Shown here in pieces: positions 15,231 to 40,900 of a stretch of DNA of 64,000 nt; position 1 is the first letter of the stretch; each line of letters begins with the position of its first letter. The stretch covers positions 9,176,001 to 9,240,000 of the forward strand of contig OZ116700.1 in NCBI GenBank assembly GCA_964199315.1, given 5' to 3'. A program made the translations under genes and the position numbers. Under the pieces are notes generated by a model, which searched no databases, was not told the DNA's origin, and saw nothing but the letters and a program-made list of their open reading frames with translations. This DNA comes from Orbicella franksi (Eukaryota).

Positions 15231-17147
15231 TTAGGTGATGACACATTTGCCTTCACTTACTTTCGTTGATGAGGCAGAAGGAAAATATCTCCTGGAATTG
15301 ATGCTTTTCAGTTGATGATTGCTGAGGAAGCCTTTGAATATTCTCGCCGAATGAGCGTTCACAACTGTTCTGGTATACGAATGCGCTTGGATGGGTATGT
15401 CAGTTTTCCAGATCCATTCATTCTTGTCTGGATCATAATGTTCTACTCTTGTATCAGATGGTGAGGCCTCAAAATTCCGAATGTTCATATAGCTGCCAAC
15501 AGCATACAGCTGGTCATCTACTGACAAAAGCTGGGGATGTACCTCCCGTCTGAATTTCAAGCTTGCAATAGACTGCCACTCATTTGTTGTTTCACTGTAT
15601 ACTTCACATTGACACCCTCCAGTGATGAAAATTCTCCCGTTACACACAGCTCCGCTGGGGAACTTTTTCGGTCGTAGAATGTCAGCTACCTTATCCCACT
15701 GGTTTCTGCAAAGATTGTACCTGTAAACATCAGTGCAGAGCTTTAACACATTCCTTTCAAGTCTTTCTTCACCGCCAATAAAATAGACAAAATCATCTTT
15801 GGCTACAATGCAAAAATCTTTTCTTCTATCCAAATGATCAAATGAAGTTACATCTTCCCATGAATTTGATTGCACTTTGTACTTTCTGATAGAGGAAATG
15901 CATTTTTCCCTGTCATTGTTAATCTCTCTGGACCAGCGATCTCTGTTTTCCACAGCTCGCATTTCAGACACCAGAGCATACATTTCATTGTCTTTACAAA
16001 CAAATATTTCCCGTAATGCCCATCTGTCAAAATCTATGTATGGTAATCTTGTCCAACAGTTCGAGTATGGATTATAGCAGGCAAGTGGACACCTCAGATC
16101 AGACCATTGCCGGAATGAATCCAGTACCTTACTATATAGTTTACCTCGATAAAAGACAAATTCTCCCTTCCCTGAACATTCACGAGGCATTTCACCTAGC
16201 TTACACCATCTACCCTCACCAGGAAAATAACACAAAATAGGTTGACCACTCAGTTCCCAGTTGATGTTGCGCACCGCACTAGTGACAACTATAACAGAAG
16301 TCTCGAGCGACTTTCTAGGTAAAATGGGCAAATTACCGTAGTTTTGTGAGTCAATTAAATTTACAGCGTCCACCACACAGTTCAGACAGCTTTCATTATC
16401 TTTCACCAAATCATTCTTTCGAATATCATTGGTTAGAAAGTCACGCGATGCAAAAACAAGTCGAACGTGACGAAACAACTCGGCGAAATATTTCTTTCGT
16501 TTTTCTCTGTCGTGATCAATCCATGCCAGAATGATCTTAAACACGTCTTCTTCGGCGCCAACATTTATTTCATCACTTGAAAGCCACATTTCCATTTCTT
16601 TGCTCGACATATTAAGAACCTCTTCACGGTTCGTTTCGTATACAGCGTTGAAATTTGCAAGGATGCACTTTTTGCTCTTGGCCAAAAGTTCTTCGCATTG
16701 ATATCTCTGGGAAACATGGTAAACTGAAATACAATTTGAAGTATTCAACATCTTTACTAAAGCTGCCTCAGCGAGCGTTTTTAAGCCCGGAAGAAATAAA
16801 TAATCGGCTGAAACGACAAGGTCTTGGGCATTCTCTTCCGCTAATATCGGAACATCACTCGTGTAAATAAACTGCAGTGTATTTCTCATAGCAGACTCGG
16901 AAAACATCTCCAAACGAACAATTCCTTCTCTGGACTCCTTCATGTCGCTGTTTAGCAGTTTTTCAAAGAAGGGACTTGCCTCTGAAAGAACTTGTTTATG
17001 AGCTTTGAATTCTTTGCCATCTTCGACCACCAAAATGACATCGCATCGCTGATCAGGCGTCTCTTTTGGCATAAAGAGTTCATTTTCTTTCCTTGGACTT
17101 GAAGTAACACAATCAGAATTATCTTCAGACTGAGATAAGGCTGCCAT
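15231..17147 (-). CDS. Kelch-like protein K1 (BTB-BACK-Kelch), 638 aa, intact, C-terminal CVIT
   Basis: Single ORF with BTB ([31 protein letters not shown]), BACK ([15 protein letters not shown]) and Kelch blades (VYFIGG...YRYN...W; CEVY...NEWQ). Confidence 0.93.
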   Translation of the reverse strand: MAALSQSEDNSDCVTSSPRKENELFMPKETPDQRCDVILVVEDGKEFKAHKQVLSEASPFFEKLLNSDMKESREGIVRLEMFSESAMRNTLQFIYTSDVPILAEENAQDLVVSADYLFLPGLKTLAEAALVKMLNTSNCISVYHVSQRYQCEELLAKSKKCILANFNAVYETNREEVLNMSSKEMEMWLSSDEINVGAEEDVFKIILAWIDHDREKRKKYFAELFRHVRLVFASRDFLTNDIRKNDLVKDNESCLNCVVDAVNLIDSQNYGNLPILPRKSLETSVIVVTSAVRNINWELSGQPILCYFPGEGRWCKLGEMPRECSGKGEFVFYRGKLYSKVLDSFRQWSDLRCPLACYNPYSNCWTRLPYIDFDRWALREIFVCKDNEMYALVSEMRAVENRDRWSREINNDREKCISSIRKYKVQSNSWEDVTSFDHLDRRKDFCIVAKDDFVYFIGGEERLERNVLKLCTDVYRYNLCRNQWDKVADILRPKKFPSGAVCNGRIFITGGCQCEVYSETTNEWQSIASLKFRREVHPQLLSVDDQLYAVGSYMNIRNFEASPSDTRVEHYDPDKNEWIWKTDIPIQAHSYTRTVVNAHSARIFKGFLSNHQLKSINSRRYFPSASSTKVSEGKCVIT

Positions 17148-17485
17148 TTCTTGCGGCTCACCAAAATAGAAGACTTAGTTTGAAAGACGTTAGACTGCGA
17201 AGGATTTCGTTTGACTTTCCTCTTGTCGTTTCCGGTATCTCGGCTCTATTTCGGTTCCGTTTGTTCTTCCGGAAATAACGATCGGAAAACTCATCCGTGT
17301 TCGCAGACTGTTCGTAGACCTTCGTAGATCCGATTTTTGAATGTTCTCTGTGATGCATTGCACCCAATACGAAGGTTAGGAAAAAGCACTTGGTCCCTCC
17401 TCTCGATCGGTAGCAAGGGGAATACACGATATGTTCGCACATGGTTTACGGCAGCGCGGAATATTGAATACAGCGGTTGTTAGAA

Positions 17486-37900: not shown

Positions 37901-40900
37901 TTTCAATGATTAACAATGTAGCTCGATGGTGTACATGTTGTTACATAATGTTCGTTAACAATGGCAGCTCAAGCTCAGCAATATGGCGGATGGTAATTGA
38001 ATTATTACCCGTCAGGCTCTTCAATTACATAATGACACATTTGCCATCACCCGCTTCCGCTGACCAGGCAGCAGGAACAAATCTCCTGGGATTGTGGCTT
38101 TTCAATTGATGATTGCTGAGGAAGCCTTTGAATATTCTCGCCGAATAAGCGTTCACAGTTCTTGTAGTATTCGAACGTGTTCGGATGGGTATTTCCGTTT
38201 TCAAGATCCATTCATTCTTGTCAGGATCATAACATTCTACTCGTGTACCAGCTGGCGAGTCGCCTTCATTCCGCATGCAGCTGCCAAGAGCATACAGTTG
38301 ATCATCTACTGACAAAAGCTTGGGACGTACCCCCGGTCTGATGTTCAAGCTTGCAATAGACTGCCATTCATTCGTTGTTTCACAGTATACTTCACATTGA
38401 CATCTTCCGTGATACCCAGGATCAACCTTTCCAGTCATGAAAATTCTTCCGTTACACGTAGCTCCGCTGAGGAACTTTTTCGGTTGTTGAATATCAGCCA
38501 CCTTGTCCCATTGCTTTCTACTAAGATTGTACCTGTAAACATCAGTGTAGCACTTTAACAACTCTTTCCCATTCCTTTTAAGTCTTTCTTCACCGCCAAT
38601 AAAATACACAAAATCATCTTTGGCTACAATGCAGAAATCTTCTCTTCTATCCAAATGATCAAATGAAGTTACATCTTCCCACGAATTTGATTCCACTTTG
38701 TACTTTCTGATAGAGGAGACGCATTTTTCCCTGTCAATGTTGACCTCCCTAGACCAGCGGTCTCTTCTGTATTCCACAGCTCGCATTTCAGACATCAGAG
38801 CGTACATTTCATTGTCATTACTAACAAATATTTCCCGTAATGGCCACCTGTCGAAATCTATGTATGGTAACCTTGTCCAACAGTTCGAGTATGGATTATA
38901 GCATGTCAGTTCAGACGATAGCCAGTATGAATTCATTACCTTACTATATAGTTTACCTCGATAAAAGACAAATTCTCCGTCCCCTGAATATTCACGAGGC
39001 ATTTCACCTAGCTTACACCACCTACCCTCACCAGGAAAATAACACAAAATGGGTTGACAATTCAGTTTGTGGGTGACTAAGCTAGTGACAACTATAACTG
39101 AGGTTTCGAGCGACTTTCTAGGTGAAATGGACAAATTACCATAGTTTTGTGAGTCAATTAAATTTATAGCGTCCACCACACGATTCAGACAGCTTTCATT
39201 ATCTTTCACCAAATTATTCTTCAGAATATCACTGGATAGAAAGTCACGCGATGCAAAAACAAGTCGAACGTGACTACATAACTCGGCGAAATATTTCTGT
39301 CGTTTGTTTCTGTCGTGATCAATCCATGCTAGAATAATCTTAAACACGTCTTCTTCGGCGCCAACATTTATTTCATCACTTGAAAGCCACATTTCCATTT
39401 CTTTGCACGACATATTAAGAACCTCCTCACGGTTCGTTTCGTACACCGCGGTGAAATTTGCATAGATGTAATTTTCGCTCTTGGCCAAAAGTTCTTCGCA
39501 TTGATATCTTTGCGAAAAATAGTAACCGGAAATACAGTTTGAAGTATTCAACATTTTTTCAAGTTTGGAAGAAATAAGTAATCGGCTGAAAAGACAAGGT
39601 CTCGGGCATTGTCTTCAGCTAATATCTGAACATCACCCGTGTAAATAAACTGCAGTGTATTTCTCATAGCAGACTCGGAAAACATCTCCAAACGAACAAT
39701 TCCTTCTCTGGACTCCTTCATGTCGCTGTTTAGTAGTTTTTCAAAGAAGGGACTTGCCTCTGAAAGAACTTGCTTGTGAGCTTTGAATTCGTTTCCATCT
39801 TCGACCACCAAAATGACGTCGCATCGCTGATCGGGCGTCTCTTTTGGCATAAACACTTCATAATTACTTCGACTTGAAGTTAAGGCTGCCATCGTTCAAC
39901 GGAGCAAGATGGAAGAAGCTTAGTTTTAAGGACGCTAGATTGCGAAGGATTTCGTTTCCGCTTGTCGTTTCAGTCCTCGTTCACTTTAGTTCTCTCGGCT
40001 CTCTCTCGGGTCGGAAACAACCGACGGTTCGTATACTCTTTCATTCGTTTTTCATTCCGTTTGGACACTTGGATGGTTTGCTTTATCTTTAAAAACGAGA
40101 CTACGGCCATAAACATTTTGTAGATTTACTGAGCTGGCGCTTTCTTATCAGTAGAATGCGTGGCAAACGGGAAACACGAACAGATGTTTGAACATGGTTC
40201 ATGGCACAAGCGGAAGTCGAAAGCAGCGGTTCGAAAGCGTTTTCAACCCTGCTCGCGTGACCAACAGATGCGCGAGTTGTCACGCCTGAGCAAAATGACC
40301 CTATAAGCTAAAAGATTATAAAGCCAACACTATTTTTTCGCAATTTGTCACGGAATAATATAACAATGCAAATTAAATGACGTTTCTGCTCGGCTTGTCA
40401 CAACGCGAGTGGTAAGACGTGCAACAGGGCTTTGCGACTTGTAATGCAACATTGTTGCGTAACAAGTGGCAAGGAAAAAGTCGCCTTCAGGAATTCGCGA
40501 GAAAGCTTTCGAAACGGACATAATTTGGGGATGCGAAAATAATAAGGATTATTATACACTGAGCTCACTATCTCTATTCTGATTGGCCGAAAGCGTACAG
40601 TGAATTTTCGAAATCAGCGCCTGTGACGTCATCTAGCTGTAGATTATACAATAATCATGTCAAGGACACTCAAGGTCACGGGTAATCAGGTCATGTATGA
40701 CTGCGGTGCATGATTCCTAAGGGTAATCATGTCAAGTTCGCGCGCTTTGTGTTGCTTGCCGTCAGTGAAGAAGCAAAAACATGACTTCCATTTTTTTTTT
40801 TCGTTATAAGTATCAGTAATAAAACAATTATTAGACTCGGTTTTTGTGATATCCAGAATTATCGAGGTCTCGGTAAGGGTTATCAACCTCATCAGCGCGA

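Follow-up and report, generated by a model that had tools for sequence, protein, structure and literature searches.

Five BTB-BACK-Kelch genes with C-terminal CaaX boxes in the stony coral Orbicella franksi: candidate membrane-tethered CUL3 adaptors

A stretch of 64,000 nucleotides from the stony coral Orbicella franksi (GenBank assembly GCA_964199315.1, contig OZ116700.1, positions 9,176,001 to 9,240,000 of the forward strand), referred to here as the window, contains five paralogous single-exon (intronless) BTB-BACK-Kelch reading frames, K1 to K5, which are located on the minus strand from 15.2 to 39.9 kb of the window and all end in a CaaX prenylation box. In an initial annotation of this DNA, the five C-termini had been given as GKCVIT, GKCVIM, GKCVIV, GKCVIV and GKCVIM for K1 to K5, endings which are confirmed by the open reading frames (ORFs) and their terminal codons. 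Pfam scans of the window proteins returned BTB (PF00651), BACK (PF07707) and Kelch (PF01344), with K1 and K4 above the cut-offs. These are also the only intact copies, as revealed by a nucleotide alignment of all five. K1 (15231..17147), with the three Pfam domains and no frame defects in its listed ORF, encodes 638 aa, while K4 (30529..32463) encodes 644 aa and is transcribed. K2 (21981..23924) comprises 647 codons and is interrupted by an in-frame stop at codon 463, a TAA (22536-22538; GAA->TAA) that immediately follows the YFIGG motif and stands in place of the GAA or AAA of the other copies, beyond which the frame goes on to GKCVIM. K3 (26740..28632) has an open frame of 630 aa but is damaged, having lost 42 nt in the BTB domain (28387/28388), 17 nt at 28262/28263 and 1 nt at 28165/28166, and its Pfam matches are partial (BTB profile positions 7-51, BACK 34-98). 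The 17-nt and 1-nt deletions jointly restore the frame, with about 35 codons scrambled across the BTB/BACK junction, and the 630-codon frame stays open. In K5 (38025..39892), 25 nt are missing at 39558/39559, towards the end of the BTB domain; this deletion shifts the frame and separates the BTB part from a downstream 509-aa BACK-Kelch ORF (38025-39554) that ends in GKCVIM.

A full protein can be produced in the window from K1 and K4 only, and K2, K3 and K5 are decaying copies, which retain the CaaX box because they are young. Homology between the copies reaches beyond the coding sequence, by about 700 nt on the 3' side and by 0.3-2.3 kb on the 5' side, and segmental tandem duplication is therefore indicated as the origin of the array; a retrogene origin of each copy through repeated retroposition is ruled out by this same extension. 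Pairwise synonymous divergence (dS) among the copies amounts to 0.14-0.29, with a ratio of non-synonymous to synonymous divergence (dN/dS) of 0.44-0.77.

In all five frames the cysteine stands exactly four residues from the C-terminus. Read along the minus strand, the box is encoded by TGT GTC ATC ACC in K1 (15234..15245, CVIT, stop TAA), TGT GTC ATC ATG in K2 (21984..21995, CVIM, stop TAA), TGT GTC ATC GTA in K3 (26743..26754, CVIV, stop TGA), TGC GTC ATC GTG in K4 (30532..30543, CVIV, stop TAA, the cysteine being Cys641) and TGT GTC ATT ATG in K5 (38028..38039, CVIM, stop TAA). The second residue after the cysteine (a2) is Ile in 5/5 copies. K2 and K5 end in KCVIM, the same last five residues as K-Ras4B, in which CVIM is likewise preceded by a lysine. 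The initial annotation had pointed to a CVI core preserved through synonymous change amid drifting neighbours, and both components of that description hold: the variants TGT/TGC, ATC/ATT, GTA/GTG and TAA/TGA are all real, and the preceding residues drift, with a tail dN of 0.07-0.24 between copies. Within the Cys-Val-Ile codons, only two synonymous changes occur in the window, and at the tail's non-synonymous rate the chance of zero replacement in these codons is roughly estimated at ~0.1. Taken by itself, retention of CVI in the window could still be due to chance and constitutes weak evidence, because the synonymous changes are so few, the copies so young and three of the genes disabled. The argument from in-window synonymous change was consequently set aside as stand-alone proof of selection.

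A wider view of the box is provided by its homologues. With K4, an Acropora member and a basal member as queries, word-indexed protein searches and an exhaustive HMMER search yielded hundreds of homologues, with CaaX endings in 87 of 120, 49 of 84 and 21 of 60 entries of the three hit lists. In the pooled full-length set (n=250 proteins of 560-700 aa, down to ~35-40% identity), a cysteine occupies position -4 in 152 proteins, against about 8 expected from the background Cys frequency of 3.1%. The frequency of CaaX across the family is thus far beyond chance, and of the survey of cnidarian and other metazoan BTB-Kelch C-termini that had been proposed as a check on the initial annotation, the part covering the homologues of this family does return the enrichment sought. 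The possibility that the cysteine would be lost from orthologues, raised at the same time, is not borne out: a full-length, 97% identical homologue of K1 from other samples (P0011) also ends in GKCVIT, a K4 homologue of 84% identity (P0001) ends in GRCVIV, and distantly related paralogues from the two major scleractinian clades keep the cysteine as well. On a tree built without the tails, CaaX prevails in one large clade and occurs in hardly any of the ~30 most distant sequences, with at least 36 state changes of the box that look mostly like scattered losses.

Homologues with named sources come from Orbicella faveolata (88% identity, a partial protein), Oculina patagonica, five Acropora species and two Montipora species, and CaaX endings have been seen in RefSeq models from the five Acropora species, the two Montipora species and Oculina. 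All organism-named hits are scleractinian, except for two molluscan proteins, from Lottia and Mactra, which are 21-24% identical and lack CaaX. In one annotated coral genome, at least 17 CaaX members were seen among at least 37 family members. A search of the ESM-Atlas returned generic BTB-Kelch clusters only. On a chromosome-scale contig of 33,484,490 bp from Oculina patagonica, at least 15 family members carry near-consecutive locus tags (e.g. G038598/G038603/G038605 and G037007/G037009/G037018); tandem arrays are therefore found in other corals too.

The 152 CaaX tails follow the consensus K-C-[LVF]-I-M. The first residue after the cysteine (a1) is tolerant (L/V/F/S/A/I/T), a2 is Ile in 115 tails and Val in 24, and the terminal residue X is Met in 103, Leu in 14, Ala in 11, Val in 11, Thr in 9 and Ile in 4. 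Entropy at positions -5, -4, -3, -2 and -1 is 1.27, 0, 2.64, 1.16 and 1.63 bits, the zero at -4 following from the definition of the set by its cysteine. At most of positions -6 to -30 the entropy is 3.2-3.9 bits, which makes the ~30-residue linker hypervariable. By region, the values are 1.13 bits for BTB, 1.35 for BACK, 2.00 for Kelch strands, 2.66 for Kelch loops and 2.78 for the tail, with the last five residues at 1.31, conserved about like the BTB domain. The Kelch loops also carry most of the indels (193 of 355 insertion columns). A lysine at -5, just before the CaaX cysteine, is present in 123 of the 152 tails, a feature that exceeds the canonical CaaX definition.

A review of prenylation describes the a1 side chain as free of isoprenoid contact, a2 as close to the isoprenoid and X as selecting the enzyme, with A, M, S and Q listed for farnesyltransferase (FTase) and L, I and F for geranylgeranyltransferase I (GGTase-I); CVIM is the box of K-Ras4B (PMC9141697). 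The equation of CVIM with the K-Ras4B signal, and the influence of X on the choice of enzyme, had thus been correctly stated at the outset, and the Met of K2 and K5 falls within the listed FTase set. Judged by residue preferences, the free a1, the I/V at a2 and the X that is mostly M or L in the coral tails match the FTase and GGTase-I contacts described for CVIM and CVIL peptides. A polybasic stretch or palmitoylation serves as a second membrane signal (PMC9141697; PMC11042265). At least four K/R residues occur within ten residues upstream of the box in 55 of the 152 tails (e.g. KKRERKCLIM, RRRQRCIIL), and an extra cysteine is found in 23 (KCKCLIM), so that many subfamilies carry putative second signals of the Ras type, as in K-Ras, H-Ras and FBXL2. 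In the tails of the window subclade no second membrane signal was found (1-3 K/R, 1-2 D/E, net charge ~0, no extra Cys). Such a signal matters for a plasma-membrane address, whereas prenylation as such can do without it.

Vestiges of lost boxes have also been encountered. At one homologous locus (L003:3520-3546, homologue P0054), the frame ends in GAA CGA AAA TGA TTC ATA GTG TGA (ERK-stop-FIV-stop). The cysteine codon there has been turned into a stop, behind which the earlier aaX codons and terminator persist; a single mutational step has made a tail-less protein out of a CaaX-tailed one. At another locus (L004:3415-3442, homologue P0365), GKRK-stop is accompanied by an out-of-frame TGC ATC ATG TGA remnant, and the Oculina protein P0097 ends in KRKYVDM, with Tyr in place of the CaaX cysteine.

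When K4 was modelled with AlphaFold2 from an alignment of 72 sequences, the result showed a BTB domain, a helical BACK domain and a β-propeller, with a predicted local distance difference test score (pLDDT) of 85.9 and a predicted template modelling score (pTM) of 0.81. Residue 609 closes the last β-strand, and pLDDT stays below 50 over residues 626-639; in the model, a flexible linker of about 31 residues (610-640) precedes Cys641, leaving a C-terminus that is predicted to be exposed and flexible. Foldseek placed full-length KBTBD2 (from KBTBD2-CUL3), KBTBD4 and KLHL22 (from KLHL22-CUL3) at the top of the PDB matches, several of them in CUL3 complexes, and also matched the six-bladed Kelch domains of KLHL20, KEAP1 and KLHL3 (TMt 0.70-0.75). 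The modelled fold of K4 is therefore of the KLHL/KBTBD type, with a tail predicted to be disordered. In the loop between α3 and β4 of the BTB domain, the residues M69-R70-E71 (32251..32259, minus strand) form a φ-X-E motif which, in a sequence alignment with KLHL11, KLHL3 and KEAP1, corresponds to F130-S131-E132 of KLHL11 and to M-S-E of KLHL3. The φ-X-E residues of this loop have been described as clamping or inserting into CUL3, with SPOP having Met at the first position (PMC3597819). Among 72 family members, both M69 and E71 reach a conservation of at least 90%. A 3-box also appears to be present: residues 133-165 of K4 align without gaps to the 3-box region of KLHL11 and KLHL3 (the first two BACK helices), are predicted to be helical at 139-148 and 152-164, and include the near-invariant residues L134, N138, S141, Y143, C151, L154 and N165, followed by an invariant F166 in the same 72 members.

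Transcript evidence consists of assembled contigs from RNA libraries, with one raw-read run (X24) giving 3 reads on K3-K4. Sequence words from K4 occur in many coral RNA-seq assemblies, with a share of up to 0.84, and those of K1 in polyA RNA assemblies with a share of 0.91-0.93. Over K4, contigs from two RNA runs, mapped on 26700-32699, tile 30240-32521 with 0-1 mismatches, while the flank at 29900-30099 has zero RNA-contig depth and the coverage of K3 is patchy. The contigs at 30240-30608 (X1 record 1) and 30313-30608 (X3 record 17) are colinear across the K4 CaaX codons, the stop codon and the 3' untranslated region; the C-terminus is therefore not spliced away, an outcome that had been considered as a possible objection to the proposed anchor. 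In the Acropora orthologue group, RefSeq models are 647 aa long, the same length as plain ORF calls in the cluster.

The window family is best read as one of membrane-tethered CUL3 ubiquitin-ligase adaptors, anchored through a prenylated CaaX tail and multiplied in a segmental tandem array. To this explanation as a whole, in which the CaaX box of the coral BTB-BACK-Kelch family would be genuine and selectively maintained and its bearers would act in membrane-tethered cullin 3-RING ligases (CRL3), a probability of about 0.68 is assigned. Lipid-anchored CUL3 adaptors had already been suggested in the initial annotation, and that suggestion is supported by the conservation of the cysteine, the tolerance pattern of the box, the second signals elsewhere in the family, the tail-keeping transcript, the disordered tail and the CUL3-contact motif. 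The most economical reading of the family would be a scleractinian radiation of CRL3 substrate receptors.

According to the mechanism proposed, the cysteine at -4 would be prenylated post-translationally, with farnesylation by FTase expected for -CVIM, either a farnesyl or a geranylgeranyl group possible for -CVIV and -CVIT, and geranylgeranylation by GGTase-I in the subfamilies ending in -L. Cleavage of -aaX and carboxyl-methylation would follow. The disordered linker of ~30 residues, comparable to the hypervariable region of Ras, would tether the six-bladed, substrate-binding Kelch propeller to a membrane on its cytosolic side, and the conserved BTB/3-box module would dimerise and recruit CUL3-RBX1. 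BTB-Kelch adaptors are known to dimerise (PMC3597819), and each complex would therefore carry two lipid anchors. The outcome would be a membrane-restricted CRL3 ligase, with paralogue-specific substrates recognised through fast-evolving Kelch loops and the membrane address set by subfamily-specific features of the tail. For the window proteins, a plasma or symbiosome/phagosome membrane had been offered as an example of that address, and the sequence gives it no support. A tail with CaaX only is classically endomembrane-bound under the two-signal rule (PMC11042265; PMC9141697), by which the window subclade, lacking a second signal, would be directed to endomembranes or would bind weakly. The two anchors of a dimer may compensate for the missing signal.

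Several observations weigh against membrane-tethered CUL3 adaptors. Around 40% of family members have no box, which indicates that it is dispensable for some of them. Only two of the window's five copies are free of defects, and the dN/dS among the copies is rather high and fits relaxed constraint as well as diversification. With X = T in K1 and X = V in K3 and K4, three of the boxes fall outside the FTase and GGTase-I lists of PMC9141697, and in the window subclade, which has neither a polybasic nor a palmitoyl second signal, stable membrane binding is uncertain. RhoBTB3 illustrates that a CUL3 adaptor may carry a CaaX box without depending on it for its localisation (PMC3812982). Lipid attachment, membrane binding and CUL3 binding are for all members predictions from sequence, as would be any membrane or substrate named for them.

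Three other explanations have been considered. The proteins may be prenylated at a functional CaaX box and yet act independently of CUL3, as membrane-associated Kelch scaffolds such as cytoskeletal or trafficking adaptors. What the window displays, namely architecture and motif conservation, leaves room for such a role. It is nevertheless held to be improbable, considering that no parts of the family are better conserved than BTB and BACK (1.13 and 1.35 bits), that the presumed CUL3-inserting residues M69 and E71 are so strongly conserved and that the best structural matches are adaptors solved with CUL3. Slightly less credence is given to the view that the array is simply a decaying cluster, whose shared CVI core would stem from recent duplication rather than selection and whose local copies might be largely or wholly without function. 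The disabling lesions in three of the five copies, the low dS together with the dN/dS values, the mere two synonymous changes in C-V-I and the patchy RNA coverage of K3 all speak for it. It is countered by K1 and K4, whose frames of 638 and 644 codons are undamaged and whose sequences appear in RNA assemblies, and by the 97%-identical full-length homologue of K1 with the same tail in other samples; nor can recency explain conservation across the whole family.

The least probable of the three, and a distinctly poor candidate, is a C-terminal motif of another kind, in which K-C-Φ-I-M would act as a class-II PDZ ligand (Φ-x-Φ-COOH), as a C-degron or through a redox or metal-binding cysteine. Like class-II PDZ ligands, the coral tails are hydrophobic at their C-terminal residue (position 0) and at position -2, and the conservation of K at -5, beyond the canonical CaaX, also favours a motif of this kind. 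A cysteine fixed at exactly -4 (by definition in the set of 152) is, however, not needed in PDZ ligands, and the tolerance pattern, with a1 free, a2 I/V and X M/L, fits the substrate contacts of prenyltransferases. The polybasic runs and KCKC sequences upstream are classical companions of prenylation, and loss of the box strikes the cysteine codon itself, which has become TGA in L003 and a Tyr codon in P0097.

Beyond the array, three ORFs on the minus strand at 7678-11614 match consecutive sections of the WDCP family (PF15390) and are taken as WDCP-like exons, and a γ-glutamyltranspeptidase-like ORF (PF01019) lies on the plus strand at 61215-63161, on the other flank. A Ser/Arg-rich ORF of 239 aa at 34965-35684 gave no Pfam match. 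Between K3 and K4, the stretch 28839-29700 has a very high RNA-contig depth, up to ~9150 in one polyA library, and includes a self-inverted match of 240 nt (28839-29071); it probably represents a repeat or a transposable element with high representation in transcriptomes.

Cullin-RING receptors with lipid anchors have been described before, and the initial annotation had cited FBXL2 and RhoBTB3 as prenylated E3 adaptors. The first of these examples stands: in PMC9988375 and PMC9141697, FBXL2 (and FBXL20) is presented as a geranylgeranylated and palmitoylated receptor of the SKP1-CUL1-F-box type (SCF, or CRL1), whose CaaX box CVIL with adjoining cysteines brings it to membranes for compartment-restricted ubiquitylation. 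The coral proteins resemble it as candidate cullin-RING receptors with a C-terminal CaaX, and some coral subfamilies have a juxtaposed cysteine as well (KCKC-LIM). FBXL2 differs in engaging CUL1 through SKP1 and an F-box, in its leucine-rich repeat substrate domain and in being encoded by 1-2 genes per genome, as opposed to dozens, which makes it an analogue and not a homologue; the Pfam scan found no F-box in the window proteins. FBXO10 is a geranylgeranylated SCF receptor with the box CTIL, located at the outer mitochondrial membrane; orthologues share its CaaX, whose cysteine it needs both to localise to the membrane and to reach its substrates (PMC11042265). It is the product of a single gene, with F-box and PBH1 domains in a CRL1 context, and its prenylation has been shown experimentally, whereas that of the coral proteins is predicted. 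The second example applies in part only. RhoBTB3 is a Golgi-associated BTB protein that has a CaaX box and assembles with CUL3-RBX1, but its Golgi targeting is independent of the box (PMC3812982). It shares BTB and CaaX with the coral family and differs in having a Rho-like ATPase domain and tandem BTB domains and no Kelch propeller; in the Pfam scan, the window proteins show no Ras/Rho domain and a single BTB with BACK and Kelch.

In domain order, fold, φ-X-E motif and 3-box region, the coral proteins are similar to the KLHL/KBTBD adaptors (KEAP1, KLHL3, KLHL11, KLHL22 and KBTBD2), from which they are set apart as a separate, lineage-specific radiation, with the nearest named non-coral hits at 21-24% identity. 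Human KLHL and KBTBD members are not known to have a CaaX box. The tails resemble those of K-Ras4B and H-Ras in placing a flexible linker, with an optional polybasic run or extra cysteine, before the CaaX, although the cargo is an E3 adaptor of ~600 residues instead of a small GTPase and the window copies have no second signal. In the full-text literature searched, neither a report of CaaX or prenylation on a BTB-BACK-Kelch (KLHL) protein nor one of a BTB-Kelch expansion in corals was found. The principle of lipid-anchored cullin-RING receptors is known, and it is the adaptor class, the scale and the Ras-like diversity of tails that appear to be undescribed.

Compartment-restricted cullin-RING ligases with lipid anchors are a recent and small topic, represented by FBXL2 and FBXO10, in which no Kelch-type CUL3 example was found. 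If the reading as membrane-tethered CUL3 adaptors is true, a whole family with a conserved Ras-like tail would show that evolution can use the prenyl-tethering of E3 receptors at scale. As a speculative extension, itself rather unlikely, stony corals might possess lipid-anchored CRL3 receptors as a lineage-specific repertoire that diversifies rapidly and numbers dozens per genome, in tandem arrays, in which a conserved BTB/3-box module and the CaaX box would frame hypervariable Kelch loops. The types of tail (farnesyl only, polybasic with CaaX, KCKC with CaaX, and geranylgeranylated -L) would then set the membrane address, and single mutations of the cysteine codon would switch a protein between membrane-bound and soluble forms. 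Such a repertoire might serve in membrane-proximal surveillance or turnover, for example in innate immunity or in the control of intracellular symbionts, and would constitute the first prenylated family of E3 adaptors of the KLHL type. The family would also offer coral cell biology concrete, testable proteins through which the turnover of membrane-associated proteins may be regulated.

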